A stretch of DNA of 64,000 bases, from assembly GCA_025558095.1 (NCBI GenBank), contig JAIVFI010000008.1:310001-374000 (forward strand). The letters run 5' to 3'. Position 1 is the stretch's first letter. Each line of letters opens with the position of its first letter. The stretch comes from Hyaloraphidium curvatum SAG 235-1 (taxonomy: Eukaryota; Fungi; Monoblepharomycota). The position numbers and the translations under genes were made by a program. This document shows positions 4,217 to 28,206 of this stretch, piece after piece. A model generated the notes under the pieces. The model worked only from the letters and a program-made list of their open reading frames with translations, was not told the DNA's origin and did no database searches.

Positions 4217-4495
4217 CTCGGTGGAACGGGTTGCCGCGCTATCGGGACCGCACAATAAATAGGCGACTATTTGGAGTCGCGGTGGTCGATAGAGACGGTG
4301 TTGCCCTTCTAGGGACCGGATATCGGCGAGCGGAGGTTGGGACCGGCCTTGCGGTCGGCAAACACTTCTTGCCGCTTCCGAACCTCCGCAATGCCGAACC
4401 TTCAGACGAGGGATCGACCGAAGTGAAACTAGCAATCGCAACAATCATCAATATTCCCGATTGATATCATTGCATTCGTTGGCGCTGCCTCCTTT

Positions 4496-6076
4496 CTAGC
4501 TGCTCTCCATCAGGATGGTGAACTTGAATGCCAGCGGATCGAACGCCGCGTACAGGTCATCCAGCAAGTTTCGGTTGCCCGCCAGGATCGTCAGCAGCCC
4601 CTCCACCCGTTCCTGCAGCACGCCGCCGGGAAGCATCGCGGCCTTGAGCATGTCGAGCTTGGCAAACGTCCGCTCGTGCCGCCGATCGCGCGCCTTCTCC
4701 ATCCGCGCGCGGAGCTTCCGCACGCTCCGTGCCGCGCGCTCGCCGTGCGCAACGGCGGCCCGCGCGGCCGCGGCGTCGATCCCGTTGGCTCTGGCTTCCA
4801 GGCGCGCGAAAGCCGCGGCGATCTGCGCCAGCTCTTCCGACACGTCCACGGGCACATCGCCGAGGCGCTCGGCCAGCCGGCGCTTCAGCGCAGCCGTGTC
4901 CGCAAAAAAGTCCGCGGGCTCGAGCTCCAGTTCCCGTGCAAGCTGCACGGCCGACCGGTCCATGTACATGGCCGAGTTGCGCAGGACGACGATCGGGAAC
5001 GGCACCGAAAACAGGTCAAAGACGCCCTTGAGCTGACCCCAGTAAGCCAGCTCGGAACCGCCCCCCACGTAGGCGACGTTGGGCAGCAGGATCTCCTGGT
5101 ACAAGGGCCGCAGCCCGACGTTGGGCGAAAACCGCTCCGGGTGGGTCCGAGACAGCGTCCGCAGCTCGTCCCGCGAGAAGACCAGGCCGGTGCCTACAAC
5201 CTCGAAGTTGCCGTCGAAGCGCCGCTCCAGGCGGGTGCGCAGGTCGCCGTAGAGGTAGAAGAGGTTCGTCGGACGCGCGTGGATCTGCGGTCTGTAACCC
5301 AGCTTCTCCAGCCTGGCGTCCGCCGCGGTGATCGCTCGGTGTATCGCAGTGCCGTCGATCTCGCTCTCCACCACGGGGCGAAAGAAGGCCTTCAGGGCCG
5401 GCGAGTCGGCGTCGAGGGCAACCACGCCGAAGCGGCCGAAAAGCTCGTGTGCGAGCCGCCTGGTGGCTTGCGCGAGGCTGGACCCGAGCCCATACGTTGC
5501 GGTGATCCCCCGGAAGCGCGCGGGCAGGGAATCCAGGAGCTCGACGAGCGAGTCGTCGATGCGCATGCGGCCCGTTGCACCCCGCTGCTCCGGTTTCCAG
5601 CGGAAGGTCTTGCCCGCGAACGAAAAGTGGTCGATCTCGGCGAGATCATGGTCCTCGGTTGCCATGTAGAAAACCGGAACGAAGCAGCAGTCCGGGTGGG
5701 CTTCGCCGAGTTGGAAGGCGAGCTTCACGGTGCTGATGATTTTGTAGGCCCAAAAGAGAGGACCGGTCATAAGATTGAGCTGGTGGCCCGTGACAAGAGC
5801 GAAGCAGTTGGAGCGCGAAAGTCGCGCGATGTTCTCGGCAACTTCAGGGTGCACATCATCCCCGAGGTCTCCATACTGCCTCTGAAGTTCCGAAACGAGG
5901 ACGGCGCGCTGTTCCGGCGAGTAGGACGCGGCCTTGTCGCGTATTTGGTCCGCAAATGCGGGCAGGTCCGGGAAGCGCCCGTAGAACGGAGCGAGGCGCG
6001 GGCTGCGCGCGATGTAATCGATGCAGAGCGATGAGAAGGCATTCGTCGCGCCGTAATCCACGAGCTGTGTTCGCAT
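4496..6076 (-). CDS. bshC: bacillithiol biosynthesis cysteine-adding enzyme BshC
   Basis: Intronless, about 526 aa; motifs VTGHQLNLMTGPL, MATEDHDLAEI, FSPNVGLRPLYQEILLPNVAYVGGGSELAYW, coiled coil, LQER. The GHQLNLxTGP form resembles Bacteroidetes BshC. Confidence 0.93.
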   Translation of the reverse strand: MRTQLVDYGATNAFSSLCIDYIARSPRLAPFYGRFPDLPAFADQIRDKAASYSPEQRAVLVSELQRQYGDLGDDVHPEVAENIARLSRSNCFALVTGHQLNLMTGPLFWAYKIISTVKLAFQLGEAHPDCCFVPVFYMATEDHDLAEIDHFSFAGKTFRWKPEQRGATGRMRIDDSLVELLDSLPARFRGITATYGLGSSLAQATRRLAHELFGRFGVVALDADSPALKAFFRPVVESEIDGTAIHRAITAADARLEKLGYRPQIHARPTNLFYLYGDLRTRLERRFDGNFEVVGTGLVFSRDELRTLSRTHPERFSPNVGLRPLYQEILLPNVAYVGGGSELAYWGQLKGVFDLFSVPFPIVVLRNSAMYMDRSAVQLARELELEPADFFADTAALKRRLAERLGDVPVDVSEELAQIAAAFARLEARANGIDAAAARAAVAHGERAARSVRKLRARMEKARDRRHERTFAKLDMLKAAMLPGGVLQERVEGLLTILAGNRNLLDDLYAAFDPLAFKFTILMESS

Positions 6077-6223
6077 TCGACGCGTTCCCGGGCGGGTTCG
6101 GACTGGGCCGCGCCGCATGGCAGCAGGCGGCGCCGCCGCGGGGATCCGCGTCCCATCTGTATTCTCAAAGGCGGACCTGGCGTGCCGGAGCCGGCTCGCG
6201 AACGAGGCATTGCTCGGCGTCGG

Positions 6224-7858
6224 ATGGTATGGCCGCGCTGGCGGCGGAGACTCGTCCTCCTCGGCCCGTTCTTGCTCGTTGCGGCCTTGCTGAACCTCCG
6301 CGCTCCTGCGCGCACCTCTGCGCCCTCTCTCCGGATTCCATGGGGCGCGATTGGGCCGACCGAATCATACGCCGCCGTCGACACCGCGCGGAACTGGAGC
6401 TGGTCGGAATCCGACCGACCGATTGCGCTTCGGCGGCCCCGGACACGTGGCGCACTCCACGAGTTCGTCAGATGGACCGGAGACGTCGCGACGCTGCTGC
6501 CCCGAAATCCGGAGGCTTCGCCCTCGCAGCTGGACTTTCCGCTGCTCCCGCAGACGTTCGTCGTGGACCGGACGCGCTTCATTCTGGAGCTCCCGAACGC
6601 GATTCCTGGGTCGGAAGCACCTCGCCCGCGGGGTGTGGCGGTCATCTTCCAGGCCTGCCACAAGTACGCGTGCGCTCTGGACTTTTGGATACTTCCTCCG
6701 CAGCGCGAGCTGGTTGCGTTCCTCCTCACGCTGGGCTTCGCCGTGCTGTCCCCGGATTTCATCCGCTTTTCGAGAACGAATGCCGCGGGTTGCGCTTACA
6801 TGGCGCAGGAAGAGCCCCGTTGGTCGTCGAATCCGGACTACCTTTCTCTCCGAGAGTCGCTGCCGAAGGCTCTCGCTCGCTCCGGCCTTGCCGGACTGCC
6901 TCTTTTCTGGTACGCCATCTCGGGCATCGCTGGAACGGCCGCCTTGCTTTTCCGGGACATCCAATTCGCGGCGGCCGTCATTCATTCTGGAAACCTCCCT
7001 TTCTCTTTGCTCCGCGATCCCAAAGTGAGGCTTCCGCCCGTTCTACACCACATGTTCCTCCGCGACTACTACCTCCCGCGCGCTCTGGCCGAGAACTTTA
7101 CGGGCATCTATGCCGGCCGGGCGGAGCCTACCCGGGTGATTTCGGACGAACGGTGGTTCGGGCTCACCACGGGCGACGAGCTCCACCGTGCATGTCCCGA
7201 GGTGGCTTCGAGGGACGAATGGAAATCTCTGCTCGCGTGGATGTGCTCGAGGGGACGCTGCGCCCGCCACAAGAGCAGGCCGCTTAGCACGGATTCGACG
7301 CTGGCGATGGACGACTACGTCGACCCGCTGCCGAACATGGCGGGACCCGGGCCGATCGCAGGCTCTCGCTTTGACTTTGCTTCGGAAGACCGTCTCGTCG
7401 TGCACCTGCCGATCGAGAAGAAGGAGGGCTGGTTCGACAACCTGGAGGGCTGGTTCGAGCTTTTCGATCGGTCCGCCGTTCGCTACTACCGCAGGCTTGC
7501 GGTGCTCGATCTCCTGGCATTTGCCGCGACGGCGCAGGAAGGGAAAGGCGAGGGCGCCAAGGCGATCTGGGCCAGGGTCCGGGCCGCAACCGCGGCCGAC
7601 GGCGGGCCTTACGTGGAATGCGCTTCCGGCGCCGAGCTCGAATGCCGCGTGCTTCGCGCCGATCTCGATCCCCGCTTCTACGATCGTCTTGTCAACGATA
7701 CTGAGCTGGCGCAGCCGATGATTCGCAAGGCCCGGATTGCCCACAAGGTTGCGATCGGGTTCTGTATCACGTTTGCGCGGTACGTTCATCAAGGGCTGGC
7801 CGGCTACGGGGGCAAGCAGGAGATGGGAGCGTGGTTCGAGCGATGGCTTGACCCGTAG
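6224..7858 (+). CDS. type II membrane / secreted protein with possible alpha/beta-hydrolase-like fold
   Basis: Intronless, about 544 aa; basic N-terminus followed by a TM helix; GVAVIFQAC...DFW.LP...GFAVLSPD and YAISGIAG loosely fit a hydrolase core. Family not securely recognised. Confidence 0.6.
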   Translation: MVWPRWRRRLVLLGPFLLVAALLNLRAPARTSAPSLRIPWGAIGPTESYAAVDTARNWSWSESDRPIALRRPRTRGALHEFVRWTGDVATLLPRNPEASPSQLDFPLLPQTFVVDRTRFILELPNAIPGSEAPRPRGVAVIFQACHKYACALDFWILPPQRELVAFLLTLGFAVLSPDFIRFSRTNAAGCAYMAQEEPRWSSNPDYLSLRESLPKALARSGLAGLPLFWYAISGIAGTAALLFRDIQFAAAVIHSGNLPFSLLRDPKVRLPPVLHHMFLRDYYLPRALAENFTGIYAGRAEPTRVISDERWFGLTTGDELHRACPEVASRDEWKSLLAWMCSRGRCARHKSRPLSTDSTLAMDDYVDPLPNMAGPGPIAGSRFDFASEDRLVVHLPIEKKEGWFDNLEGWFELFDRSAVRYYRRLAVLDLLAFAATAQEGKGEGAKAIWARVRAATAADGGPYVECASGAELECRVLRADLDPRFYDRLVNDTELAQPMIRKARIAHKVAIGFCITFARYVHQGLAGYGGKQEMGAWFERWLDP

Positions 7859-7998
7859 ACGCTTGGACGATGGGACGTTGCTCTGTTAGAGATGAGACGG
7901 CCTGGTACTGTATCTGCAGACACCTCTGAGGGACTGGACTTCGAGGGGAGGTGATTGGTGTGGCTGAGTCCGCCCTTCCCCTGCTTCGGAGGTCGGAA

Positions 7999-8160
7999 AT
8001 GCCCGCCTGTGCGGCTCAAACGGAGCCGAACAGCTCTCGCAGGCCATGCGTCGGCATCATTTGCCACGATTCGCGGGGCGGAAGCTCGAGAATCGCCTGC
8101 CAGCTCGCGGCGTCCCTCTCGCGTCGGGACGCAGTTCGAGTTCATCTGTTTACCCGGTCG
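7999..8160 (+). pseudogene. bshA: N-terminal fragment of BshA (GlcNAc-malate synthase, GT4 glycosyltransferase)
   Basis: VGIICHDSRGGSSRIACQLAASLSRRDAVRVHLFTRS matches the BshA N-terminal pattern IGIxCYPxxGGSGxVATELGxxLAxRGHEVHFIT; similarity stops abruptly after HLFTRS. Confidence 0.75.
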
Positions 8161-10822
8161 GCGGACAGGGGCGGCTCCCCGGTGCGCGCCGCCGGCTGCA
8201 GCGACGCCCGGCGGAACGGCTCGGCGGACCCCATGCGGAGGAGGCGGAGCGGAGGAGGCGGAGGGAGGGGGAATCAGATCTGTAACGCCCGCGGATACGA
8301 AAGCTCTACCCAGATCCCAATTCAACTGTTCATGTAGTCCTCGATTACACTATTCTCTTTCCGTATCTTCACGCCTCGTCCTTAAAATCGACCTAGAGGA
8401 CCGCGTCGCGCGATATACATGGCTTCTGCCGTCGGTCTGCGTCCCCATCCTTTGGTCTATATGAATAGCCCGCCAGACAGGGCGTCGATCTGCTCCTGCT
8501 CGTGGAACTGTGCTTTTCCGTCCCTATGTCGGCCTCCTGGCCTGATCTTGATGTGATCGGGTCTTTGACGATTCCGAGGCACTCTGATGGCAGACGTCGG
8601 TTGCTCCCAAACAACCCGCTGAAGCACAAACCACCCTCACGGGACAGCGACTCTTTGCTCGTCTGCAGCGCCAAGAAACTCAAGGCGCACTTTCCGAGCC
8701 CCTGCTGGACGACCTTTCGGCTATCGATCTCTTGTCACGCTCGCTCACAACTTTGCCTACCGCCTCCCCTCCCCGACCATTGTTTGTTCACCAACTCTGC
8801 TCGCGGGAACCCTGCTCTTCGACTTTCTTCGGCTAGGTGAGTTTTGATCGACGTCGGCAAGGGACGGAAAGTGCGCCAAGGGTATCGAGGCGCTCATACG
8901 GGTTCATGGTTACCCCGGAACTGGTCACCGTGAGTGGTGACCCGCTAAGGACTTCCCGTAGAAGTCCTAGGGAGTGATTGCCGGTAGAAAGCGTCGAGGA
9001 GCTCGGCGTATGATCACTCTACGACCACAAGGTAGTCCCATCGCGCTTGCCCCTCGCCAAACCGCCCGCAAACAGCCAAACCTCCGAACCCCTCACACGC
9101 GCTGCAGAGCACGGCGCGCCACGCTGTGCATCGGTTTTCATTCAGCTGGTGCATTTCTCGGCGCCTCCGCGGGTGATGGCGCCGGGATTCGGTCGCGAGG
9201 CGGTGCCGGAGACCGTTGGGCCCTCCCGCGGTCAGGTGCGATCGTCGGCGGCCGCAGGCCTTGCCGGCGGTGCTTGACCAAGCGACGCGGCTGCGCACAC
9301 CGCGGCGGCATCGCGCAGGCTCGTGGTGCCCGTCGATTGGTTTCTGGCGCGACGGTGGTCGACCCCGGGCAGATGCCAAGTCGGGCGCTGGCCGTCGGCG
9401 CGGCTCTCCCGTCGTTTTTTGCTCGGAGATTTCTTTTTTAGAGCCGCTCAGGAAGAATGTCGGCGTGGATTTGTCTTGGGCGCCTTCTTCCTGTGCCGCC
9501 GGATGGGGTGTGCGCCCAATGCCATTTGTCGCTGCCTGCGGAGCTTTGAGCGCCGCCGGTTCGACCCCCTGCCTGTGCGGCCTCGTCGCCGCCGGCGGGG
9601 GCTGGATGGCCGCGCTTGCGTTGCTGTTCTTGGCTGCGACGAGGTACCCTGTCGAGGGGACTCCGAGCCACCCTCTCTGGCGGCGGCGAGACGCTGGGGC
9701 CCGTGTTGCACTGCTTCTGCGGGACGTTTCTTTCCTTTTGGTACAAGTCGGCGTCTCCCGGGCACGATTCTGACGCGGCGCTGCGGAGCGCGGCTCCCGC
9801 GACGGCACGCCGAGGACCTCGATCGCATCCGGCAGAGCGCCCTCTACTCCCCTTCCGGTTGGCGTATATCTGCAGCAGAGTGCCCGTGAACCGCAAATGT
9901 GAGTGTCCGCGCCGCGATGCTCTCCGTGGCGTCGGCTGACTCGCTCGTCGTCGCTAGGAACCGCATCCGCCCCTTTCGCGATTCCTCTGCGTTGCGGCCC
10001 GCTGCTCATTCCTGGACCCATTTGGATACCCGGACCGTCGTCAAACCCGCGCCACCGCTGATCGGGCACACTGCCATTTCTTCCGTCCGTGCGCGAACGG
10101 GCAAACCCCGGCTAGGGGCAGCTCAGCGGCCGCGACGGCGGTGTCATCCGGTCCCCGTCTACTCGCTTCCTCTCTCGCTATTGCTCGCCATTGTAGCGAT
10201 GGAGTAGTTGGCTGGCTTGCTTCTCGGACACGGTAGCTGGACGGGTGACGTGGCGGGCGTCGCTCTCGCGCATGTGGCGGATCTTCTTCGTTTCGAATTC
10301 TAGGACGTTTTCTTTGTTTTGAGGGAGGATCTTTTGCCTCGGAAGCGGCTTGCATGTAGCTCGGACGCGCCTGTGGCGACCTGATGCTCGTGGGACCAGG
10401 ACGCCTCTTGCAAACAAGGTCAACAAAGGACTCCCCCCGTGTCGTCTTTCACGCACCAGACCTCCGGCGCCAGCAGTCGCGTAAGTTTCCGAGCTTTTTT
10501 GTCTTGATCTGCGACTGGCGCGGCCGGGCAGCGCCGCGGAGGGGGGGGGTTTGGCCTGGGGCGACCTCCATCTCGGGCACTTCATGCCCGGCCATCCGCG
10601 CCTGCCGCCGGCGGAGACCCGGTCTGGCCCGGTTCTGCGACCTTTGGGTCGCAAGCTGCGGTTTGCGGGGGCTCCCTCGGCCGCGGCGGTCCGTGCAGCC
10701 GGCGCTCGGGCCCGGCCGGCAGAACCTTTCGCCGGACTTTGCTCACGGCCGTTCCCGCGCCAGATCTCTGCGACCTCGTGCTCTTCACCGTGTTCTGATC
10801 TCATCTTTTCCGGATTCTGACC

Positions 10823-13800
10823 ATGGCCGGGGCCGCCGAGGCCGCAGTCGACCTGCCCGACCCGGGTGCTGTTCCGCCCGAGGACATCAGCGCGGCGCTT
10901 CAGGGGGCGCCGACGTCCGTCATCTTGGGCTTTTTCGACGAGATGTACGACAAGACGTCCGAGGCCGCGGCGCTGCGGCTCGAGATCTGCGAGCTCGTCG
11001 ACCCCGAAGACGGCACGTCGCCCCGCAGGGCCGTTCCCCGGGGGAAGGCAAGCAAGATGGACATCCATGCGCGCAAGACGGCTGAGGAGGAAGTGACCGC
11101 CAAGCGAGCGTCGGCCCTCCGCGACGGCGGCAAGTGCGACTACGAGGGCCTGTTCCAGACTTACTGCCGGGTCCGCGCCGCGGTTCTGGACAAGCGGGTG
11201 GCTCAGTACATTGCCCGAGAACGGAGAACCGAACGCAGGGTGCAGATTGAACTCGCGAGGCAGCTCAAGGCCGAGGCCCGGGACGCGAGGAGATCCACCA
11301 GGGTCGAGGATGTCGCCGCGGGCAAGGTGGAGCACCCTGAGCATCACCCGCGCCGCGTTAGCTACGATGCTTCGACCGCGGCTGTGGGTCTGTGCATGGC
11401 CCTAGGCGTGTTGCTCGGCTTTGCGGCGTTCTTGGATATCACGATGCAGTCAGTTGCCGGCATCGCCAAGGGAGTGGCCAAGGGAGCCTTCGAAGGGGTC
11501 GCCGCCGCTGCCAAGGGTCTTTGGACGGCTCTCGTTACCCGGCGAGTCGCCGCCGCTTTCCTGGCCGTCGTCGCGCTTCTGGTCGCCGTCTTTCTCGTCG
11601 GACACGGGAGCCCCGACTGCCGCTCGAGCGACTTCCCCGCCTTACCTGCGCGAATCTCTGGGTCGTTGCCGAACTCGACAAGATCTGTGCACCGCCTCGG
11701 AGCTCACGTCGCCCGGCCGTCCTCACCATCCGCATCGTTGCATGGGGACGCCAGCGGGGTGCGACTCGTTCGCCGCGTCGCTCCGACCCCTGCCAGCGGC
11801 CCGGGACCCGCGCACCCGGCGCAGCCTGTCGAAGTGCAAGGGGCCGGCGCCAAAGATGTCGCGCCGTCTGCGGCGCCGTCATCACGGTCTCGCCCGGCCC
11901 AACGCCTCGGGTCTCCTCGCGCGGCGCGCGCCGCCGAGAAGTTGCTGGGGCGTCACACCGCAGCCGGTGGGTTTTGATCGCTCCGGATCGCATGGAGCTC
12001 GCAGCATTGACGCTCCCCACTCGTCCGCTGGCGCAGACGTCGTTGCCATGTGCGATGCCGAGCTCGCCAGGCGCGCGCAGGCCGAGCTTGCCCGCACCCA
12101 GCTCCGCCACGCTGTCATTGCCTTCCAGCTCAGGGACCGCATGTGCGACCGTCCTGGCAAGCTCGACTACCTGACCGGTGAGCTGCCATGTGGGCCCTTC
12201 GGTGCCATCTCTGACATGCCGCCTCTCTTTGTTCAGATTCCGAATGGGGAACGTTCGTCGGCGCCGCGCTCACCTGGCGCCTCAAGATGTCGGGCCCCTG
12301 GCGTCCGGCCTCCGCGGCGCCCTCCGCCGCCGTCGCCGATGCTACCGCACACGACCACCAGTGTGGTGTGATGGAGACGCCTCCGGCCTCGTGGACACCC
12401 CCCGTCAGGCCGGCCTCGGGCGCCGCGCTCATCCCGGCTCCGTCGTTGACCATCCACCCTCCCTCCGAGCCGGACGCCTCCGCCGCCGAACCCGCACCGC
12501 GCGCTGCCGATGCCGGGCTTGCCGCAGGGCCCGGGCCACTGGCTGCCGACGCTGTTGCGGCCAAGGTCGTCGCCGGAGCTGTCGACAATGCGCCCGCGCC
12601 CTGGACCCCAGCCTCTCGACCAGCTCCCCGACCTCCCTCCCCCACCCCCGCCGTTTCTGCGGTCGTGGCGGCAGGCCCAGAGCGCCGCGACGGAGACGAC
12701 GACCCCCCGACGCCCCTCACCCGGCCGTCGTCGTCTGCTTGGCGAGAGGGCGGAAGCCCCGCAGTCGCGTCGGAGGCGGCGCCGCCCAGCGGACCTCCTC
12801 TTCATGACGCGGGCGCGCGCTCTCTGCCTGTTGCGGGTGGCGCCGACGACGAGCCCGCTCCCCGGGTCCCTTGGAATGGACCGCTCTCGCGGTTCACCTT
12901 GGCCGGCCCGTGGACCGCCGCCGAGGCGGGCGAGGTCGACGAGCCGGAGGTGCTCTTCATTCTGCACCTCCCGTCCGACGTTGTGGCTGGGCACAACGCC
13001 TCGCGCGGGGTTGAGATCTCGATGCGCGCCTCGGATACGGTGTCTGATCTCCAGGTTCGTCGCGATCCATTCCTGTCGAGGCGCAAGCAGTTGACGCCCT
13101 TCCTACGCCCATTCCCGATCGCCACAGGTCCTCGTCGCAGACCGCATCGGCTGCCGTGTCTCTGCCGTCGACCTCTTTTCCGACCACCATCGGCGCAGGC
13201 GACTTTGCCCCGCAGCGTCGCTGGGCCAGTGCGGGATCCAGGCCGGCAGCTCCGTCTTTGCCCGCCGGCTTCGCAAGTTCACCCTATTCGTCTCCTCCTT
13301 CCCCATCACCCTCAGCGACGGCCTGCACTCGCTGAACAAGACCCTGACGGTCCGCGTGGGCTCCGACTTGCGGATCTCGGCGCTCAAGGTGGGCCAAATT
13401 CTCACCATGGCACCCGGCTGTCTTGCTGACCTCCCAATCCGCGCGCAGAAATCCGTCGCAGCCCGCCTCGGCGTCCCCAAGACGTCCTTCTACCTACGCA
13501 CACGGAGCGGCCTCGTCCTGGAGAAGGGCGGGCAGGTCGGGGACGAGCAGGTCGGGGACCTGCTCTGGAACGAGGCCACTCTCTTGGCCACCGTCCGCCT
13601 ACCCGGCGGGGCCAAGAACGCGACTTCGAGCGGAGGAAGGCGGGGGAGGGGAGGCAGGGGCGGTGGTCGGGGTGGGAGGGGCGGCCAGGTGCCCAAGACG
13701 CCCAAGCGGGTTCGGTCGGAGGACGAGGACGAGGGCGACGACAAGGAGAGCGACCCGGATCCGGAGGTGACGACTGGCGGCAGGGGGGTGGGCACGGAAC

Positions 13801-16800: not shown

Positions 16801-19800
16801 GGACCGCGACCACGGAGGCGTTAGGTGCAGGGGAACCCGAGGGCGATCGAGAGGGAGCACCGGAGCAGGGTCGTGGGGCCGAACGGCCGCGCCTGTTGGT
16901 CAGGCTGCGCAAAGTGGACGCCGAAGGCTTGCGCTGGGAGCACGTTCGCGGCGATCACGCGCCGGCGTCGGGCAACTTGCGGGGCGCAGGTCGCCAGGAT
17001 TCGGCTCCCGCGCCCGCGCCCAAGAAGCAGAAGCGCGGCCGCGGGAAGGCCGACGAGGGCTTCAAGCTGGATCCGAAGGACGCCAAGGCGGACGAGGCGG
17101 AGGAGGAGGAGGCCCAAGGCGCGCGCAAGGGCGGTGGTGCTGTCACGATCCCCGGCCCCGTCCTCGACCACCTGGTGCAGCCCTGGTCCGGGCCCGTGAA
17201 GGACTTCATCTGGGCGCAGGTGCGGCAGGGTAAGGGCAGGCCGTCGGACGCGGACATCGAGGACTTTATGCGGAAGCAGCTCGGTCTGATCGGCACGGAG
17301 AAGCAGGCCGAGGTCGAGCTCGCGGAGAGGCGCAAGTTCGGCGACTTCATGGCGCTGGCGTTCCGCACGCAGCAGAGGCTGCTCATGGCCGGGAACGCCG
17401 CTTTTCGGATCGTCTTGGACACGTATCTGCACTTGGACGAGGAGCAGCGGGCTGCGTGGTTCCCGGGAGTGCCTCCTTCTCTCAACTGCTCCGATCCGGA
17501 AGCCCTAATTGATAATACGTACGCGGCGGTCGCCACCGCGCTGAGGCTCGAGGGCGGCGGAGATCCAGCTCGATTGGGTTCGGGGATCCCCGAGATCCGC
17601 GCCTTCCTTAGGGAGCTGGGCAAGGAGCTGACGTGGATCGGCCTGCAACCGGACGAGGACCCAGTGCGGATCCGCAGCGGCTTTGAGGAGTGGCTGAAGC
17701 AGAAGAAGGCGGCAGCGAAGGTTGCCTACGCGAAGGACTTGGCGAAGAGCGGCAAGCCACCGCGCGCGCGCAACCCCCATCTGGAGCGGGCGGCGGAGAT
17801 GGAGGTCGGAACTCTGTGCCGCATTTTCCCGGACCTCGCGCGCGAGTACCTGGACCAGCCCATTTCGCCGGACCGGGAGGACGGAAGGAAGCGGCTGTTC
17901 CTGCAACGCAACATCCTCCGGCTGGCGCCGCTCAAATCCTGGAGTCCGCGCGGAGCGGATGGCCAGGACCGTGCGGACGAGATCCTCGGGCTGCCTGCCG
18001 AGCTGGCATTTGCGACGGACGAGGATGCGGGACCCGACCGCACCGAGATCCCGGCGCCGCAGCCCGTGGACCCCGACCTTCGGCACGAGTATCGGCAGGC
18101 GATGCGGGAAACCAGCATCGCAATGGGCAGCGATCGCCTCCTCATCGCGATGCAAGAGGCCGCCGGCAGGCAGCTGCGCGGCCTTGCCTTTGTTGATTTC
18201 GTGGAAACCAGGTTCCGCGTGCTCGCCCGAGAGCCTGGGCTGGCCTTCCACCGCGGCGGCGCCCTGGACGATCCCACCCGCCGCTTCGTGTACGGGGACC
18301 TGTCGGCGCCGGACTTTGACCCCTCGCTTCCCGTCACGCTGCTCTTTGGGAACTGCCCCAAGCTCGACGTGCTCCTCGGTTCCCGCCGCCACTTCCTCAA
18401 CCCGACCAACAAGCTCCTGTTCAACGTTCTCAACGTCGTCGCCCTGCACCGGCTGCAGAACGCCCTCGAGCGTGCCAAGGTGGGCTCCCCGTCGCTCGGA
18501 AGCACGCACACCCTCACCCGTGCTGACACATCGACGCAGCGCGGCGATCCCGGTCGGTACCCCGCCGAGGTCCTGGAGAAGGACATCAAGGCCATCAAGG
18601 CTGACATCAACATGATCAAGGAGACCGAACCCCTCAAGGACCCCGACGATGCTCACTGGGAAGCGGCGACCGCCGCGCGCTGCCGCGTTCTGGGCAACAT
18701 TGTGTTCGCGGACGTCAACAGGATGTGCCCGATGCTGTTTGTGGGTGGCGACAATTGCCGTAGCATTCCAAGCGCTCGACTGACGCCTTCGCGCAGAACG
18801 ACGGCGACGAGTGCTGCTGCTGCGATCTCCCCCTAATGCTCCGCGTCGGTCGGGACAAGGCCCCCGAGCTCACCAAGGACGAGGCTCGCCGCGCGATGGC
18901 GCTCCACCGCCGAATGCAGCTCGAGTTCCTGCGACACGAGCTCCGAGCCTTCCACCCTGCGTTGGTCGTGGGCCTCGGCGTCAACATGCGCAAGGTGCTC
19001 GACGCCGCCTCTGGCGACCGCGACGTCCCGACCACCCCGCTCCCCTTCTCCACGGGCGGCGTCGCCAGCCTGCGGCTGCAGCCCGTCACCAACGACGACC
19101 TCCTTCCCCCGACGGACTTCGAGGTCGCCATGGCCCCGCACCCGATATCGGGGGTCAAGCTCCCGTCGCACCTCGCGGATTCCATCACCGCCATCAACCT
19201 CATCCCGGACCCCTCCCTCGTGCCGGGCGACGCCGCCGTCGTCGGTCCTTCCTGGCGCGCCGTGGCAAACATCGACGAGGGTGCGCGCCTGGCGATCGAG
19301 CGCCTGCTCCCGAGGGTCTACCGCAACTTCCCGGACACGGACGCCTCCGGGACCCCTCTCATGGTCTCGCTCGCCGCCGCATCGCTGGCGATCTCGGACT
19401 CGTTCATCGAGCACGACACCATGCACCACTCCTACAAGCTTTTCCCCGGGGTTTTCGCGCAGATCCATTCCTCCCGTCTCGTCTCCACCCTCACGCGCCT
19501 CGCCCGCGACGGTCTCCGCCGCCTGGTATACAACAAGGCGCACGCCTACCTCTCCAAGGCGTTCGCGCCCGGGGTCCCGCGCGGGCTCATCAACGCCCTG
19601 GCGTACCGCCTCCGCTGCGTCCTCGTTCCGCCGAAGCGCGGCGGCGCGCGCGCGATCGCGGCCGAGGAAGAGGGAGACGAGGAAGCAGAGGAGATTGTGT
19701 TCGCCGGGGTGCGCCAGGCCGCGGGCGACGACGACGCGGACACTGCCGGGGCCGTGACCGACGAGACGCCCGCCGAGACCGTGCTTGACATCTACGCCCG

Positions 19801-22399
19801 CGCCACCATCCTGGTCGGCGAGGTGGAGGGCGACGTTGCCGGTCTTCGAGAGCGCTTCACCGCGGACCTGTCGGCAGAGAAGCGCGGGCCGATCGAGGCC
19901 GCCTTCGACCTGTTCCTGAACCTGCTCACGGTTGCGGACGGAGGTGTCCGCTCGGCCAAGCACAAGGACGACGTGCGCACCGAGGTCGGCTTGGGCACGA
20001 CCGAGCTTTCCAAGCTGACTCTGGTGGAGCAGCTGGTGATGGTCCGCCGCGGGGTCGTGGCGGGCGAGCTGCGCCAGAACGTTGTGCCACGGCTCCATGC
20101 CGGAGACCGCTTCCAGCCCGTGGACAACACGGCGTTCGGGCGCTGGATCTCTGCCTACATTGGACATTTGCATCGGCTGAAGGAGGGCGGCACCGACAAG
20201 GACGGGAGGCCCGTTCCCTTTGCCCTTGCCGACGTCGTTCGGGGCTGGGATGTGCCGCGCATCAAGGCCGTCCAGGATGCCCTCGACAAGCAGAACCAGG
20301 CCACAAAGATTGACACCGGCACTGCGCCCGGCCTCCCCGCGCTCATGAACAAGATGATCCCCGGCCTGGCCCGCGTCGTACGCGGTCCGGCGATGGACCG
20401 GGGGGACGCGCACGTGGACAGGTTCGAACCCTACAAGTCTAGCCACTTCCAGTCCAACGGCATAGAAACGCGGATACTCGTGACCAACCAGCGCCATCCG
20501 CACCGCTACAACCAACTCGGCGGCGTGCGGACCAAGACTGCGGTGGGTCATTTGGCGCAGCGGCAGCTGACTGCGAGCAGATGCTGACCACCGCTCGATC
20601 GTGGCAGGCGGGGGACCCGATCCTCGGCGACAACCCGCGGTGGCCCGTCGACTGCAGGGGCTGCAAGAAGGGCAAGTGCGATCGGCTGTACCCCGGCTGC
20701 TCGTAGGTGTCCCGCACGATCACCGACGCCGATATACCTGATCCCGAGTTGCTGACGCCCGCGATCAGCGACTGTGCCGCGGCCAACCGCGCGTGCGTGT
20801 ACGATCTGCCGACCTGCAAGCCCTGCGAGGCGGCAGAGCGGGATTGCGACGGATGCATGCCGACCTGCGGGTGCGTCTCCAGCTTTGACGTGCATGCCGG
20901 CGCCAGAGTCTCACACCATCCGGTGCCGCGCAGCCACTGCTCCGCGAGCTCGACGTCGTGCACGTGGTCCGTCGCGCAGCCAGAGCGATACGCGCAGGTG
21001 ACCAGCAACGCGTTCCGCCGCACCCTGCCCGAACTTGCCGGGCATCGGCACATCAAGGCCGCGACCACGGCAACGGTGCCGGCGGCGGACAACGAGGCCG
21101 CGAGCGCGACCGCCGGCATCCCTCCTGCTCCTCCACCCACTCCTCCCTCTCCTCCCGCCCCGCCCGGGCCGCCGGCCTGCGGCTCGACCCCGATCTCCAG
21201 CCGCTGCTCCTCGTCGTGCTGCCATGTTCGCGCCGGAGCCGCCGGCACGCATGACCACGCGCGAATCGTGGTACTGGAAGGACAGCTGTGCTGTCGCCCT
21301 CCATCGGGCCCCGGCGGCCGCCGGTGTCAGAAGCTGCAGACGGACGGCAAGGACGTGCCGTACTTCTTCAGGCACTCGACGACCGTCGAGGCTGCGGACA
21401 GCCTCGCCCTCGAGTCGATCCTGGTCGCGGTCGACCCCGGCACCGGCGGCCACACGATCAGCGTCACCGTTCACTTCCGCGGCGAGGGCGGCCAGCTGGA
21501 GCAGCTGACGGTGCACCGCAAGTTCGAGCCTCTCTCGTCCGCCGGATACCGTGCACGCGACGAGGAGGCGAGGTCGGCGGCCTGGTGGGAGGCCCATGGG
21601 GCGATGTCGCAGGGGTTGCGCGGGATCTCGAGGTCGCCGTACCCCATGGACGGCGTCATGGCCGGTGCGCGAGCTGTCGTCCGCGTTTCCGAGCGCCGCA
21701 GTGCTGACCTCTTTCCCGTGCCCAGGTGCCGCCTTCCTCCGCAATGCCGGCCCCCTCCTCGACCACGCGCAGAGCCGCAAAGCCCAGCTGGCCAAGGCCT
21801 ACCGGTTCCGCGCCTTCCAGGCCCGCAGCAACGCCATCGTCAACTGGATCACGGAGGCCTGCGAGGCCCTGTGGCGGCGCAAGACGTATGTCGAGACCTA
21901 CAACGCCGCCGTCCGGCAGGCCCAGGGCGCGCACGGTGGCCGCAAGCCGACCGCGGAGGAGCTCAGGATCACGGAGCGCGCGGCGCGCGAGGCCGCGGAG
22001 CAGGCCGTCGACCGCATCGCCGCCGTGCCCAACCCCATTGTTCTCTGCGGCGCTGGCCAGGGCTCGTCGTCGAAGATGCCGTACCGCGGCGGCATCGCCG
22101 AGCTGCTCTCGCGCCACTTCCTCGTGGTGATGCTCGGCGAGCACAACACGTCGCAGCGGTGTCCCACGTGCCTCTCGGAACTCAAGGCGTACCCGCTGCG
22201 CAAGGGCGACGTCGAGCACAAGGTCTGCCCGTCCTGTGCCGGCCGCTCGGACAAGCACGGCTTCAAGGACAAGCTCGAAGTCAACAAGAATCGGTCGGCG
22301 ACGTTGTGCCTCATTCGAGTGTTCCTGCACATCATTGCCACCGGCCAGCGGCCTGCCGCCTTCACCCACCCCGCTGCTTTGCGCGGAACTGCCGGATAA
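10823..22399 (+). CDS. giant multidomain Fanzor1-like protein (about 3,575 aa): TM region - 2x ubiquitin-like - FEN1/XPG-like nuclease - UDG-like - 2x Zn2Cys6 - RuvC/zinc finger
   Basis: Thirteen GT-AG introns join consecutive ORFs in frame: 11967-12036, 12178-12236, 13055-13127, 13389-13448, 14827-14903, 15329-15399, 15961-16028, 18480-18539, 18741-18796, 20543-20607, 20703-20768, 20871-20933, 21665-21725. The spliced length is 10,728 nt. RuvC-I VAVDPG (21433), RuvC-II GEHNTSQRCPTC (22139), KVCPSC zinc finger, and the C-terminal RPAAF typical of Fanzor1. Confidence 0.82.
14635..14660 (+). repeat. (CAG)n microsatellite encoding poly-Gln within the giant Fanzor gene
   Basis: Run of CAG codons giving QQQQQQQQQ. 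Confidence 0.85.
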
Positions 22400-22530
22400 A
22401 CCGACCCGGCGCGAACCTGAATGGGTGAGTGTAGGATTTCTCTCGGGCAGGGCTTTCTCGGGCCCTGAGCATTCACGGAGGAGTTGACCAACCTCTCTCC
22501 CCTTTTCAAAAGTCTGCGGATAGTGGCGGG
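22400..22530 (+). ncRNA. candidate Fanzor omegaRNA (scaffold plus flank-derived guide)
   Basis: Directly follows the Fanzor stop; nested stems GTGAGTGT(22425-32)/GCATTCAC(22469-76) and CAGGGCTT(22448-55)/GGGCCCTG(22460-67). Position matches known Fanzor/TnpB omegaRNAs; boundaries inferred. Confidence 0.5.
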
Positions 22531-23256
22531 GACTCGGATGTTGTGACCGCTGTATCTCGACATCATGCCTTTCTGGCGAGGGATGTCTTTTGCCTGGATT
22601 CCTGCCCGACGGTCTTGCGCAACTTTGTTCCTGTCGAACGCTTTGCTCGTCGACGCCGATCCACCAATGCGGGCTGCAAAGTTGTCGGCCATGTTTCCAA
22701 TTTCAGGCCCGTCAAAAATCCGCTGATGGTCGCCGAGGTTTTCCAGATTCTCCGCCTGCAGTCGACCTCCGTCACGCTGAAGCTCATCGGAGATGGCCCG
22801 TTGAAGGGCGAACTGACTATGCGTCTGCAGGAACGCTGTTTGTCGGATGGCGTGCTCAGTGTCGACAGTGTGTCGGGAAGCGTGCACAGTGTCGGCTTCA
22901 CCCCGGACGTGGCGGCGGCTCTTCATGAGTGCGACGTCCTCTTTGTTTCCAGCCAAATGGAGGCATTCAGTCTAGCTGCATTGGAAGCCATGGCAGCCGG
23001 AGTGGCGGTAGTAGCTCCCAGGGTCGGCGGCATTCCGGAGCTCTTGACCGACAACGAAACGGGAGTTCTTTACGAGCCTGGGGACGTCGCGGGAGCCGCG
23101 GCAGCCTTGAAGGCGGTCCTGGGTGACGACGCCTTCCGAAGAAGGCTCACGGAGCGGGCATTTGAGGTGGCAAAAGGGTACGACGTGAATGCTGGCGTCG
23201 CTGCCTACGAGCGGCTCTATCTCCGCCTGCTCAGCAGAGGTCGAACAACGATTTGA
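22531..23256 (+). pseudogene. bshA: C-terminal portion of BshA (GT4 glycosyltransferase)
   Basis: SDVVTAVS, NFV, the BshA signature GHVSNFRPVKN, LIGDGP, and SQMEAFSLAALEAMAAGVAVVAPRVGGIPE. No start codon or N-terminal domain; the HVHYAIPH region was not found. Confidence 0.88.
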
Positions 23257-23467
23257 CACCGGGTACACGCGCAGCTATGTATCTTTCGCCAAAGTCAAAT
23301 CCCACCGAGATGTGGGTCATCGTCCGTCCTCTCCGTCCGATGCGTCGGATCGTGGAACTGCGTCTCGGAGACGAAGCCGCCCGCGATGGTTCGCGCCTTT
23401 CCATCAGGCGTTGCAGAACACACAGTCCGGCTCGAGTTCACGCAGCCGGTCATTGCACCACAGCCAG
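23231..23467 (-). pseudogene. bshB1: decayed, internally deleted second copy of the bshB1 3' half
   Basis: Clear nucleotide similarity to 27475-27950 (e.g. TCAGCAGAGGTCGA...GATTTGACACCGGGTA, GAGATGTGGGTC, GTCCGTCCTCTCCGTCCG, GGCGTTGCAGA, CAGTCCGGCT) with two large deletions and small indels. Confidence 0.88.
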
Positions 23468-23643
23468 GTGAAGCTTGGGCGCGATGTGGCTTTCGCATTT
23501 TTGCACGAGATCCGGCTACGCCCGAGAATTAGGCTTTGGCTTTGACTCGTGACCGTATCCCTCCCCGGTCCAGACCGCGCAACTTGACTCATGCCGCAAC
23601 CCCCCCTCCTTCAGTAAACTCAACGCCGACTCCTTCGACCGAA

Positions 23644-26600
23644 ATGAACCTCATGAAAGCGTCGGCGGTCGCCGTCGGACTGGCTGTGATTTTGGCCGCG
23701 TTGGCGGGACCGGCCAACTCGGACGGCACATACAGTTGCTACGATTCCGCAGGCTGCTCGTCCAATGCCTGCATTGACGGAGGAAAGCAATGCCACAACG
23801 ATTTCGATTGCCAGGGAACGTGCGGGAGCTGCAAACAATGCTGGGCATGGGGCTGTGGTTTTCTCGGAATATACTGGGCAAGCTTCCCTCCAGTGGCGCC
23901 ATCGCATGCCGCTGATCATTACAATGCTTCCCCATCATAGGACTGCGGAAAGAATTGCGCTAAATGCGGTGGCTCTTGCAGCTCGACTTCCAACTACTGT
24001 AGCAGCAGGTCAGGCTGCTACACAACCTGCCAGTGCTCGTCTTCCTCGTGCGGCTCGAACCAGTACCTTTCTGGCTGCGGAGGCTCCAGCTCCGGCACTT
24101 GCACAACATGCGGATCATGTCCTCCTGGACAGGAGCGCCAGGGATGCTACGGCCTGAACTCCGGAAGCTGCAACAGCTGTCCGTCGATCCCGTCTGGCGC
24201 CTGGTTCACTGGCTCAGGATGCAGCTACGAGGCCTGTCCCTCCGGAGAGAGCAACTGCGGGTCGCCTACAAGAGACGGCAAAGCTTGCGCAAATCTCCAG
24301 ACAAACCAATGGCATTGCGGCGCGTGCAACCGGGCGTGCCCTTCGGGACAGATTGTGAGTTTTGGTCCATCCTGCGCATGAACGAACCTGCTGACAAACG
24401 TTTGCCCTCCAGTGCACACAAGGCAGCTGTGCGTGTCCGTCAGGAACCTCCATGTGTGGTTCCACCTGCCTGGACCTTCAATCGGACAAGAAAAACTGCG
24501 GCACGTGCGGAACTCCGTGCTCGGCCGGCAAGATTGTAAGCTCCAGCTCCCGTACCCTCGCACGATCGCGCTAATGTTCCGTCTTCGCAGTGCTCGTCGG
24601 GGACGTGTGTATGCGAAAGCGGCCTCACGGACTGCTCTGGGAACTGCGTGGACTTGAAGGCTTCGTTTTCGCACTGTGGCGGATGTGGCACTGCGTGCCC
24701 TGTTAACCAAACGGTACTTTAAAGCCGCCGAACACCTGGAATGGTTAGATAACGCCTCGTCCTCAACAGTGTCTCGGCGGATCATGCGGGTGCCCAAACT
24801 CGCAAACGTACTGCGGTGACAACTGTTTCGACACCTTGACCGAAACCAAGCACTGTGGAGCATGCTCCAAGGCATGCCCAGCGACTCAAATTTGTTCATC
24901 CGGAACCTGTGTGTGTCCAATTGGGTTGGCATATTGCGCCGACAGCGGCCTGTGCTCCGATCACAAGACGGACACCGGGAACTGCGGTGCATGCTCCAAG
25001 CGGTGTGGACGCGGACAAACGGTGCGACATGTTCTCGATGCTCTCTTTGCTGCCCTGCTAATGAGACTGCAGTGCGAAAATGCGACTTGCATCTGCCCGA
25101 GCGGGCTTTCCTACTGCGCTTCCGTCGACTCGTGCATCGATCTGCAATCTGACACACAGAACTGCGGTTCCTGCGGGAGCGTCTGTCCCGCCGAAGCCAC
25201 GCGCTGCTCCGCTGGCCAATGCCGGCTTGCAACATTCTCTGCTGAGCCTGCAGGTGCTCCGATGGTCTCTGACAACACCACTGCGCTCGGTCTCATGCAG
25301 GGCTCCAACTTCGGTATCTCCACGGCCCGAGGCGGCCTCGCCTGCACGCCCAAGTGCGCCATCAATGCCGCCGCCAAAAGTGAATACGTCGTTGGCAGAG
25401 TGTCGAACCTGACGGCCGTCTACACCTTGCGCCGGGGCACGGTCTGTCTTCTCGTCCAGGAAGCTCCAGGTTTGCCAGCTGCCTTGATCGAAGCAGGTTG
25501 CCCCAGGAGCGCATCCGCCGGCAAGCGCCAAGATGGCAATCTGCTGCCATTCTGGCACGTCTACAATTCCTCGGGATCCATCAGGCTGCTCAATGCAAAC
25601 ATGGACGACGAGACGGGGTGCATCTTGGTGCCGTCCTCAGGCAATGTCGGCCTAGGCGCATGCGCAAACGAGACTGCGACAACGTGGAACTTCAGTCTGA
25701 CTCTCGAAAGTGGAACGAGCACGGTTCCGATCGGCGTCATTGTGGGCGCGGCAGTTGGCGGTGCCGTTGCCGTGGCCGGTGCAGCAGGCGCCGTCTACTA
25801 CGGAGTCCGCCGAAACAGGGCCAAGAAGGATGCATCAACCGGATCTGAGGACCGGAACTCGGACTGCAGCCGAGACGACATGATCGGAGAAAGTTCCGTG
25901 AAAAAGGCGCCGCACACGCTTCCTGTTCCCACAGTGTTTGCCGCAGTTCCTGAAACGGTGCCTGGCCCGAATTCGGCGACGCCGAATAATCCAGATTACG
26001 AAGTGGTCCCGGCGTTCCCGGCAGGCAGCGTGTTGTACAGAACATGGGGGGGCGATTCAGAAGGCTCCATTCTATCCGTTCCGGTCAAGCACTACTCAAC
26101 GGTCGACTACGCGTACGCGGCGACGGCACCCGATGAGCTCGCCCTGAAGCCCGGAGGTGAAGGCGGCATAGCGATTGTTCGTCGCACTTTCACCTTATGG
26201 CATTTCTCAGATCGAATCTACGTCGATAAAGCTTTCAGTGACGGCTGGGCTTTGGGAAGCCTTGCCGATGGAAAGCAGGGTCTGTTTCCAGGCGACTTCC
26301 TGGTCTTTGCGCAGGCACCTTCACAGCCACAAGTTCCTCCACGAATGACCTGCTCAATGCCCAAGAGCGAGCCAGCGACGTTGTACGAACAGAAACCAGC
26401 ACCGTCGAAGACCATGAGCGGATCCTCATCTTCAACAGCTATCGAATCCAAGATGTCCAAGATTGCGGCAAACGATTTCGGCCCCTTCGCCTCCAAATTG
26501 CTCGTCGACTCATCGGAGATCATTATTGACCGCAACCAACGGCTTGGCGAAGGAGGTTTCGGCGTCGTGTACGCCGGTATCCTGCGAGGTTCCAACGCAG

Positions 26601-27410
26601 TTGCGGTCAAAACGATCAAGGGAGACTTGGACGAGAAGACAATGCTGGCATTCATTAAAGAGGTCGTCAACTGGGAGGGTTTGGTTCAGCGCAATGGTGA
26701 GCCGCGCTGATCTGCAGAGTGAAGCCCACGACCCACTCTTCCCAACTCAGTGCTGCCGCTCATGGCTTTCTGTATCTCGCCCCCAATGATGATTACCGAC
26801 CTGGTGGAGGAAGGAAACATGCGCAAGTACCTCGCCGGGCACAACTGGGACCAGGCTATGGGTCTCAGGTTCCTGATCGAAGTCACGGCCGGCATGTCGT
26901 ATCTCCACGGCAGCGGCATTCTGCACGGCGACCTCAAGTCGCTCAACGTTCTCATCGATGGATCACGGGCCGTCATCACCGATTTTGGCCTTTCACAGCT
27001 CAGATCCCAGGTCAGCAAGTCGACAAGCAAGGTCGGAAACGGGCTCCAAGGGACCCCGGGCTTCGTGGCGCCGGAGATCCTCGCGGGCGGCAGGCTGCAG
27101 GCTCCGGCAGATGTGTACGCGTTCGCCATGACGGCCTACGAAGTCTTGTCGCGCGGCAGCTACCCGTTTGAGGACTTGACGAACGTCGCAACAGTAGGCT
27201 CCGGCACGGCATACGGCGTATCGGTCCTGACGCATGAACGAACAGATCGTCTACAAGGTCGCAGTCGAGCAAGCCCGCCCGGCGCGACCTGATGGCGTGG
27301 CCGACCCGGTGTGGACGTTAGTGGAGAGATGCTGGGCGCACGACCCAGCAGCCAGACCCACGTTTGTGGAAGCACACGATCAGCTTGTTAAGATTATCGC
27401 GCAGCTCTAG
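23644..27410 (+). CDS. receptor-like TKL protein kinase: signal peptide, Cys-rich STIG1-like repeats, TM helix, SH3 domain, kinase
   Basis: Multi-exon; repeated DxxNCGxCxxxC units; TM IGVIVGAAVGGAVAVAGAAGAVYYGV followed by RRNR; SH3 YAATAPDELALKPGD...DGWALG...GLFP; kinase motifs LGEGGFGVVY, VAVK, HGDLKSLN, DFG, GTPGFVAPE, CW...RP. Confidence 0.9.
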
Positions 27411-27474
27411 GTTGGCTTGCTGTATAGATCGTCGCGCTGCTTTACCTCCACTAGATTATGTTGGCGCATCCTGC

Positions 27475-28206
27475 TCAGCAGAGGTCGAGCAATGATTTGA
27501 CACCGGGTATACGCGCAGCTATATACCCCTCTCCAAAATCAAAGCCCGCCTGATGGCCAAACTCACGGGCGCGAGCTTCGACGAACCTGATGAACGCGGG
27601 GGTCGAGATGTGGGTCTGCGGTCCGTCCTCTCCGTCCGGTGCGTCGGGATCATGGAACTGCGTGCGGTAGGCGCGAATGGCATCCAACTTCCGGTCCCAG
27701 AACTCGCTGATGTCCACGACAAACGTCGGTATGAGCAGCCGGTCCTGGATGTAGCTGTAAACGTTCTTTGGTCGCCATGGGGCCTGTGCTTCGCCATCGG
27801 GGCCCAATGTCGCCACCTTGACCAATCCGCTGAGAAAAACGGACTCGGAGACGAGCTGCGCCGCCCGCGAGTGGTCCGGATGCCTTTCCACCGGGGCGTT
27901 GCAGAGGATGCAGTCCGGCTGGAACTCCCGCAAAGCTTGCACAGCCGCCAGCTGCGATGCCTCGTCGTTCCGGAAGAAGCCGTCGCGCAGACCCAAGTTC
28001 CGCCGCACGCTGAGCCCCAGGATTCGGGACGCGTCCTCCGCTTCCCGGGCTCGCGTCTCGGCTGTGCCCCGCGTGCCCAGCTCGCCGCGCGTGAGGTCGA
28101 CGACGCCGACCCTCCGACCCCGCGCAATCTCGCTCAGGATCGTCCCTCCGCAATTGAGCTCCGCATCATCGGGATGCGCTGCAATGACGAGCAGGTCCAG
28201 CTTCAT
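27475..28206 (-). CDS. bshB1: bacillithiol biosynthesis deacetylase BshB1 (PIG-L/LmbE family)
   Basis: Intronless, 243 aa; MKLDLLVIAAHPDDAEL, VDLTRGELGTRG, RHPDH, LSGL, YIQD, QF, THISTP, EG. Resembles Bacteroidetes BshB1. Confidence 0.93.
   Translation of the reverse strand: MKLDLLVIAAHPDDAELNCGGTILSEIARGRRVGVVDLTRGELGTRGTAETRAREAEDASRILGLSVRRNLGLRDGFFRNDEASQLAAVQALREFQPDCILCNAPVERHPDHSRAAQLVSESVFLSGLVKVATLGPDGEAQAPWRPKNVYSYIQDRLLIPTFVVDISEFWDRKLDAIRAYRTQFHDPDAPDGEDGPQTHISTPAFIRFVEARAREFGHQAGFDFGEGYIAARIPGVKSLLDLC

Follow-up and report, generated by a model that had tools for sequence, protein, structure and literature searches.

In bacteria, bacillithiol is made by a route in which BshA joins UDP-N-acetylglucosamine (UDP-GlcNAc) to L-malate, BshB1 deacetylates, and BshC is required for the addition of cysteine. 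The compound is regarded as a bacterial thiol, with some reports from archaea. A full-text search of a library of papers returned no report of bsh genes in a eukaryote. Here, we compare the pathway of Bacillus subtilis (BshA, BshB1/BshB2, and BshC; structures 4WBD and 6P2T, together with 2IXD from Bacillus cereus) and the bsh genes of Hymenobacteraceae-type bacteria with a locus of the monoblepharid fungus Hyaloraphidium curvatum SAG 235-1, in which bshC, bshA, and bshB1 are neighbours in nuclear DNA. The stretch that was analysed, referred to below as the window, comprises 64,000 nucleotides (positions 310,001 to 374,000 of contig JAIVFI010000008.1, assembly GCA_025558095.1) and is located midway along a contig of 855 kb; the assembly totals 31.9 Mb in 55 contigs. 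According to the reading that we prefer, to which we assign a probability of about 0.6, the locus is a horizontally acquired bacillithiol cluster that has since been inactivated by a transposon, and bshB1 and bshC are the intact remains of a pathway in the course of being lost. The bsh genes and gene pieces are as follows.

4496 to 6118, reverse strand: bshC, an intact, intronless open reading frame (ORF) of 540 aa
7999 to 8175, forward strand: bshA 5′ stub, with a possible ATG at 7999 and BshA homology at 8050-8175 (codons ~3-43)
22507 to 23256, forward strand: bshA 3′ remnant, codons ~143-379 (to 23253) plus the stop; an open frame, transcribed, with no start codon of its own
27475 to 28206, reverse strand: bshB1, an intact, intronless ORF of 243 aa

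The bshC ORF scores 374.5 bits against the NCBIfam equivalog TIGR03998 (cut-off 265.8) over model positions 2-525 of 529, or 93% of the score in the closest bacterial genome (374 vs 403 bits). Both the Rossmann-like N-terminal domain (PF10079, E = 6e-100) and the C-terminal coiled-coil domain (PF24850, E = 2e-24) are present. Comparison with 117 bacterial BshC sequences shows that 57 of the 59 invariant columns are retained, as are 85 of the 92 columns that are at least 95% conserved, and the protein is a distant match to the structure of B. subtilis BshC (4WBD; E = 1e-35, 126 bits). The annotated protein (P0001, 526 aa) is 100% identical to the ORF and starts at the Met encoded at 6076. By sequence, the ORF is a member of the family, and a cysteine-adding activity on glucosamine-malate (GlcN-malate) is predicted.

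The bshB1 product, annotated as 'putative deacetylase LmbE-like domain-containing protein', scores 276.5 bits against TIGR04001 (cut-off 182.5), as compared to 50.7 for BshB2, 34.7 for MshB, and 32.5 for Mca, and reaches 100% of the score in the closest bacterial genome (276 vs 275 bits). It retains 41 of the 42 columns that are invariant in a comparison with ~118 bacterial homologues. The AHPDD motif (H11, D13, and D14) aligns with H12, D14, and D15 of the B. cereus BC1534 structure (2IXD), and the HPDH motif (H109-H112) aligns with H110-H113 of the same structure, in which H12, D15, and H113 constitute what we take to be a His-Asp-His zinc site. An annotated 3′ intron that would give the protein a different 15-residue tail (P0241) was rejected: the RNA contig described below is unspliced at this position, and the ORF read without interruption can be aligned with structures of bacterial BshB1 as far as residue ~231, that is, some way into the part in which the annotated tail departs. 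The preliminary description of this locus, drawn from the sequence alone, had called bshC and bshB1 intact, and the above-cut-off scores of both, the two Pfam domains of BshC, and the invariant columns agree with it. A second LmbE-like deacetylase is encoded on another contig (C43:55846-56409) by a 376-aa ORF that bears an N-terminal extension of ~108 residues and, among NCBIfam families, scores best against BshB1 (115.7 bits, below the cut-off), and it represents a second bacterial-type deacetylase in this fungus.

In variable columns, BshC and BshB1 agree with the consensus in just 32-44% of cases, and this divergence, together with the retention of the invariant columns, points to purifying selection over most of their history in the fungus. 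Neither protein carries an N-terminal extension of more than 14 residues, and hence nothing suggests that they are targeted to an organelle.

Disruption of bshA

The third gene is in two pieces that are parted by a 14.3 kb repeat block. The 5′ stub, which is divergent from bshC and 1.9 kb away from it, is 40-59% identical over 36-42 aa in tblastn searches with eight BshA proteins, and its sole NCBIfam match is TIGR03999 (23.8 bits, model positions 3-38). The 3′ remnant, 44% identical to full-length BshA, scores 144.5 bits against the same model over positions 144-374 (cut-off 273.7; next family 85 bits) and keeps 39 of the 43 columns in which conservation is 95% or higher. In a search with a profile built from 98 BshA proteins, positions 3-43 fall at 8050-8175 (forward strand, E = 7e-11) and positions 150-379 at 22531-23241 (forward strand). 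BshA is the best-matching NCBIfam family for both pieces, and their nearest full-length relatives pass the TIGR03999 cut-off; what the locus holds are fragments, each below the equivalog cut-off, and not a full-length, two-domain GT-B protein.

Positions ~44-142 are absent from the window, both in tblastn searches and with the 98-sequence profile at E values up to 50, and a genome search with BshA residues 1-160 returned the stub alone; ~100 codons are missing genome-wide. A giant intron spanning the 14 kb gap is rejected on these grounds, and it is also contradicted by an RNA contig (see below) that enters the remnant from the transposon end, in a spliced frame without a start codon. The preliminary description had recognized this copy of bshA as disrupted, which the two pieces and the lost codons bear out, and had predicted an intact bshA elsewhere in the genome. 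That prediction did not hold in searches of the 31.9 Mb genome with TIGR03999 and with residues 1-160: no second bshA was found, and the other TIGR03999 matches score at most 64 bits and are generic GT4 C-terminal domains. The repeat block between the two pieces has the following components.

8176 to 9066, no strand assigned: mosaic of short dispersed repeats, with 73-100% identical copies on contigs C11, C2, C36, C8, C32, C17, C19, and C23
9067 to 22501, forward strand: high-GC repeat element of 13.4 kb, with repeat copies elsewhere in the genome
21551 to 22399, forward strand: Fanzor/TnpB-like ORF, the last ORF of the 13.4 kb element (right end)

A profile search of the mosaic (8176-9066) detected BshA similarity in no frame. 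Its first 99 nt (8176-8274), which adjoin the bshA stub, recur with 100% identity at C8:205611-205709, on the same contig, 112 kb upstream and in the opposite orientation. The 13.4 kb element, with a GC content of 0.67-0.71 vs ~0.60 in the flank, is 94.9% identical over 13.5 kb to C31:133551-147040 (reverse strand), giving at least two near-full copies, and partial copies are located at C17:483899-486506 and C15:287490-287949. All copies terminate in the same sharp 3′ end (...GTTGACCAACCTCTCTCCC), which at this locus falls 5 nt ahead of the first aligned codon of the bshA remnant. Terminal inverted repeats and a target duplication were looked for at the ends of the element, and none were seen.

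The ORF at 21551-22399 has a weak match to the Cas12f1-like TNB zinc ribbon (17.6 bits, Pfam cut-off 26.3; E = 0.004-0.007), and the Atlas clusters closest to it consist of TNB proteins of the Cas12f1-like type from Mucoromycota and giant viruses (score 0.95, with 175 features in common). No RuvC domain turned up in this ORF, although no search aimed at RuvC was made, and Pfam searches with 20 long ORFs of the element returned nothing besides the weak zinc ribbon. The element resembles Fanzor/TnpB-bearing eukaryotic transposons in having a TNB-ribbon ORF at its end, several copies, a sharp 3′ end, and no target duplication, but it differs from them in its very large size and in that its other ORFs have no Pfam match.

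Transcripts and linkage to fungal genes

Two public data sets of the same organism (X1 and X2), used as contigs only, were compared with positions 22350-28349 of the window, where two further features are located.

22424 to 22511, forward strand: intron of 88 nt (GTGAGT...AG; joint 22423>22512 in X1) that joins the last exon of the 13.4 kb element to the bshA remnant and spans the insertion junction
23940 to 27410, forward strand: intron-containing protein-kinase gene between bshA and bshB1, given from its first RNA-supported exon to its stop

X1 is RNA-derived. Its 4,344-nt contig covers 22371-22423 and then continues from 22512 through the entire bshA remnant into spliced exons, with further GT..AG joints (introns of 51-58 nt) at 24354>24413, 24535>24591, 24712>24769, 25020>25072, 26154>26209, and 26695>26750, for a total of seven GT..AG introns (51-88 nt) between 22424 and 27193. 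A separate bridging contig holds an eighth intron (27194-27245), and a 1,535-nt RNA contig without a joint extends from 27246 to beyond 28349 and takes in the whole bshB1 ORF. The right junction between the transposon and bshA is real in this independent data set, and the bshA remnant is now the spliced tail of a transposon-derived transcript, in which it is situated downstream of the Fanzor-like stop, out of frame with the Fanzor-like ORF, and in a spliced frame that lacks a start codon. The 88-nt intron begins 25 nt past the stop codon of the Fanzor-like ORF, and its other end is in host DNA beside the element, which means that transcripts running out of the element are joined by splicing to any sequence that follows it, in this case the bshA remnant. 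Loose contig ends at 22435 and 22479 were considered as a sign of another bshA allele; this was rejected, as they trace back to contig C1, which carries a 45-bp homologue of the transposon end. A joint between the bshA remnant and the kinase gene (23876>23940, 63 nt skipped) has GG..TA ends, for which an intron of non-canonical type, a polymorphism, or an error of assembly could account.

The ORFs of the kinase gene have Pfam matches to Stig1, SH3, and Pkinase, with kinase motifs in the translation and a stop at 27408-27410. This gene and bshB1 run towards each other, and their stop codons are separated by 64 nt, so that their 3′ untranslated regions must overlap, which explains the merging of the RNA contigs. 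The bshB1 region is transcribed, and sense transcription, with the strand inferred, is the simplest reading.

Intronless genes with GC content and GC at third codon positions (GC3) equal to those of their closest bacterial relatives could have entered the assembly as bacterial contamination or through chimeric joining. The evidence against this is such that we give it next to no weight. The X1 contig joins the bshA remnant to GT..AG-spliced exons, and the bridging contig ties these to the bshB1 region; the physical linkage of bsh genes to spliced fungal exons makes contamination or chimerism very unlikely. Parts of the region are also present in X2, a data set from a second study that consists of short, unspliced, low-depth contigs and is DNA-like. 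Furthermore, bshA is interrupted by a fungal transposon with other genomic copies, BshC and BshB1 are at most 56% and 69% identical, respectively, to known bacterial homologues, and the genes lie well inside their contig, flanked by U3 small nucleolar RNA (snoRNA) genes, a citrate synthase gene, and kinase genes.

Composition does not help to decide the matter. GC content is 59-66% in the bsh genes and 53-61% in the kinase exons lying among them, within a window that ranges from 55% to 76%, so that the similarity to neighbouring genes asserted in the preliminary description is true; it says little given a GC content of 64-66% in the closest bacterial relatives. As a test of foreign origin, composition is uninformative, donor and host both being GC-rich. 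The clustering of the three genes within 24 kb of a eukaryotic genome is confirmed by the profile matches and by the linked, spliced RNA contigs, the intact ORFs and the GT..AG introns of the kinase gene agree with intronless bsh genes interleaved with intron-containing ones, and the proposed fungal host is correct, given that the annotated BshB1 carries the Hyaloraphidium curvatum name and the U3 snoRNAs mark a eukaryote.

Bacterial sources of the bsh genes

Trees of BshC and BshB1 were built by a quick method, with partial taxon labels taken from source names. The fungal BshC falls within a 12-member clade of uncultured bacteria (SH-like approximate likelihood ratio test [SH-aLRT] support 100) that is nested among Adhaeribacter, Pontibacter, Rufibacter, and Hymenobacter, and the fungal BshB1 is sister to the same uncultured group (SH-aLRT 95). 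The nearest homologues are 52-56% identical for BshC and 65-69% identical for BshB1, and the nearest of each (P0007 and P0243, respectively) come from a single metagenome-assembled genome (MAG), GCA_031425525.1. The surroundings of the nearest BshC homologues are bacterial (type IX secretion system [T9SS]-tail proteins, DUF4295, and ribosomal proteins). A single Hymenobacteraceae-like Bacteroidota lineage is thus a well-supported candidate for the donor of both genes. The fungal proteins share length, domains, and equivalog-level scores with those of Hymenobacteraceae (Hymenobacter, Rufibacter, and Pontibacter) and the uncultured sister clade, inside which they nest, but they differ in the modest identities given above and in end branches that are ~5x the median; the three bsh genes are scattered in bacteria of this type, whereas in the fungus they are neighbours.

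The source of bshA appears to be a different one. The remnant is 34% identical to the BshA of MAG GCA_031425525.1 vs 44% to a metagenomic BshA set, and the stub is 57% identical over 37 residues to P0121 and P0130, which belong to a divergent BshA subfamily. A quick BshA tree was suboptimal, a constrained tree being 32.6 log-likelihood units better, and was replaced with a careful tree of 48 rows. This tree separates, at 100/100, a canonical clade (Bacteroidota including the family of the MAG, Acidobacteriota, Bacillota, and Gemmatimonadota) from the divergent subfamily, with the fungal fragment in the latter. Forcing the fragment into Bacteroidota costs 34.9 log-likelihood units, with a marginal p value of 0.039 in the approximately unbiased (AU) test, and a position at the base of the canonical clade is not rejected (p = 0.37). 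Over the C-terminal half, the fungal sequence scores 144 bits, as compared to 292 for the BshA of the MAG and 174-200 for the divergent subfamily. In the family of the MAG, 15/15 sampled genomes carry one canonical BshA (561-570 bits). Divergent-subfamily members P0121, P0130, P0138, and P0192 score 280-316 bits on TIGR03999, just above the cut-off of 273.7, and in bacteria the divergent BshA genes have PIG-L deacetylase genes as neighbours, with a fusion of a methyltransferase to BshC alongside in one contig. To judge from these scores and neighbours, the divergent subfamily is a genuine bsh-cluster component.

It is likely, but not certain, that bshA came from a second bacterial donor of the divergent-BshA type. 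The subfamily (P0121, P0130, P0134, and relatives) is the closest to both fungal fragments, at 44-57% identity, but the fungal copy stands apart in the loss of ~100 codons, its very long branch, and the Hymenobacteraceae-type bshB1 and bshC beside it. Transfer from bacteria, as put forward in the preliminary description, is borne out by the bacterial contexts of the homologues and by the position of the fungal proteins inside bacterial clades; the Bacteroidetes-like donor proposed there holds for bshC and bshB1 and probably not for bshA.

Thiol chemistry and fate of the cluster

The genome was searched in six frames for enzymes that use bacillithiol, with exons scored singly, an approach by which short split genes could be missed. 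Within this scope, the bacillithiol reductase YpdA/Bdr was not found (TIGR04018, best score 62.6 bits vs a cut-off of 339.9), and the models for BrxA/B, YtxJ/BrxC, and DinB_2 (TIGR04191, TIGR04019, and PF12867) had no match. Glutamate-cysteine ligase and glutathione synthetase are both present as eukaryotic, multi-exon genes. The suggestion in the preliminary description that the transfer gave the fungus bacillithiol as a non-glutathione thiol thus finds no sign of present use in the genome, which lacks detectable user enzymes and has glutathione synthesis, and the genome search that it had called for, covering intact bshA, ypdA, brx, and a DinB-type transferase, returned none of them. With the sole copy of bshA broken, the bacillithiol system is incomplete. 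The B. subtilis pathway and the fungal locus have the three enzyme families and the aligned zinc site of BshB1 in common, but the relationship is distant, and the fungus differs in its broken bshA and in lacking YpdA, BrxA/B, YtxJ, and a DinB_2-type transferase.

The intact state of bshB1 and bshC, with their conserved catalytic positions, leads to two alternatives. In the first, the pathway is active, and bacillithiol is made alongside glutathione, with an intact bshA in a second haplotype or in other strains, or with another fungal GT4 enzyme supplying GlcNAc-malate. The abundant RNA contig over the bshB1 region, the scarcely decayed bshA remnant, and the other GT4 genes in the genome are in keeping with such activity. 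We nonetheless consider it improbable: the 31.9 Mb contain no other bshA-like sequence, the search with residues 1-160 having returned the stub alone; no RNA contig enters the bshA remnant from the middle of bshA, the loose ends being accounted for by the homologue on C1; and homologues of the reductase, bacilliredoxin, and S-transferase were not found. In the second alternative, bshB1 and bshC are kept for a role that is independent of bshA, such as processing GlcNAc-malate or bacillithiol conjugates of bacterial origin that are taken up, or acting on another amino-sugar substrate. Both genes are strongly conserved even though bshA has been broken by more than one repeat family, which suggests that some time has passed, and the BshB1-related deacetylase on C43 (115.7 bits) also fits such a role. 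We regard this as unlikely, since BshC is not known to have a role independent of bshA, neither a transporter nor a user enzyme was found, and conservation measured along the entire branch gives no evidence of selection since the disruption.

Most likely, bshB1 and bshC are still-intact leftovers of a pathway under loss. An ancestor of Hyaloraphidium curvatum would have gained the three bacillithiol biosynthesis genes from bacteria, and these would have come to lie among ordinary genes of the fungus, in a nuclear segment of ~10 kb. Before the insertion, bshC and bshA would have been divergent and 1.9 kb apart, with bshB1 ~4 kb beyond bshA and one fungal gene in between. We infer that this cluster once ran the bacterial bacillithiol route, and its genes would have been conserved for a long time in the fungus. 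In the sequenced genome, the 13.4 kb transposon with its Fanzor/TnpB-like ORF and ~0.9 kb of other repeats now stand in place of bshA codons ~44-142, and, without a second bshA, GlcNAc-malate cannot be made by the bsh route.

Several points weigh against this account. No decay is seen in bshB1 or bshC, and the bshA remnant is free of stops and frameshifts over 249 codons, which suggests either that the loss is recent on this time scale or that some other use has kept bshB1 and bshC in place. The assembly represents one haplotype, and, of the junctions at 8175/8176, 9066/9067, and 22501/22502, the independent data cover the last, on the right of the insertion, only. The X1 contigs are strandless, so that transcription of the convergent kinase gene could in principle have run on into bshB1 and given the RNA seen there as antisense. 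The proposal of two donors depends on one half of a gene, whose branch is long (1.25 changes per site), and the AU test behind it is marginal and concerned a group named after the tree had been seen.

Should the reading hold, a complete set of bsh genes reached a fungal nucleus, probably from two donors, ended up clustered, and was under purifying selection long enough to diverge by ~30-45% from its sources. The locus would then capture a loss in progress, in which a transposon has removed the first step and left the other two genes pristine, and would constitute a datable natural experiment on the gain and loss of transferred pathways. It also frames a simple chemical question, namely whether any eukaryote makes bacillithiol. 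A bolder version, in which a working pathway was assembled from two unrelated bacteria, clustered, and is still used to make bacillithiol by other strains, a second haplotype, or sister species, seems to us quite unlikely; if true, it would be the first eukaryotic use of bacillithiol and would exemplify a metabolic cluster that transfer assembled and that was subsequently lost.

The eukaryotic nature of the window follows from the presence of a pair of RNA genes located beyond the bsh region.

53670 to 53900 and 57359 to 57589, same strand: two U3 snoRNA genes (Rfam match, equal scores)

The pair, 3.7 kb apart, looks like a recent tandem duplication. On the other side of the cluster, ~280 bp downstream of bshC and on the same strand, a flavin adenine dinucleotide (FAD) amine-oxidoreductase gene (3032-4219, reverse strand) has nearest Atlas clusters that are nearly all bacterial (Actinomycetota and Pseudomonadota). 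Its ORF stops within the Amino_oxidase domain and probably continues beyond an intron, and the gene may be another transferred one.

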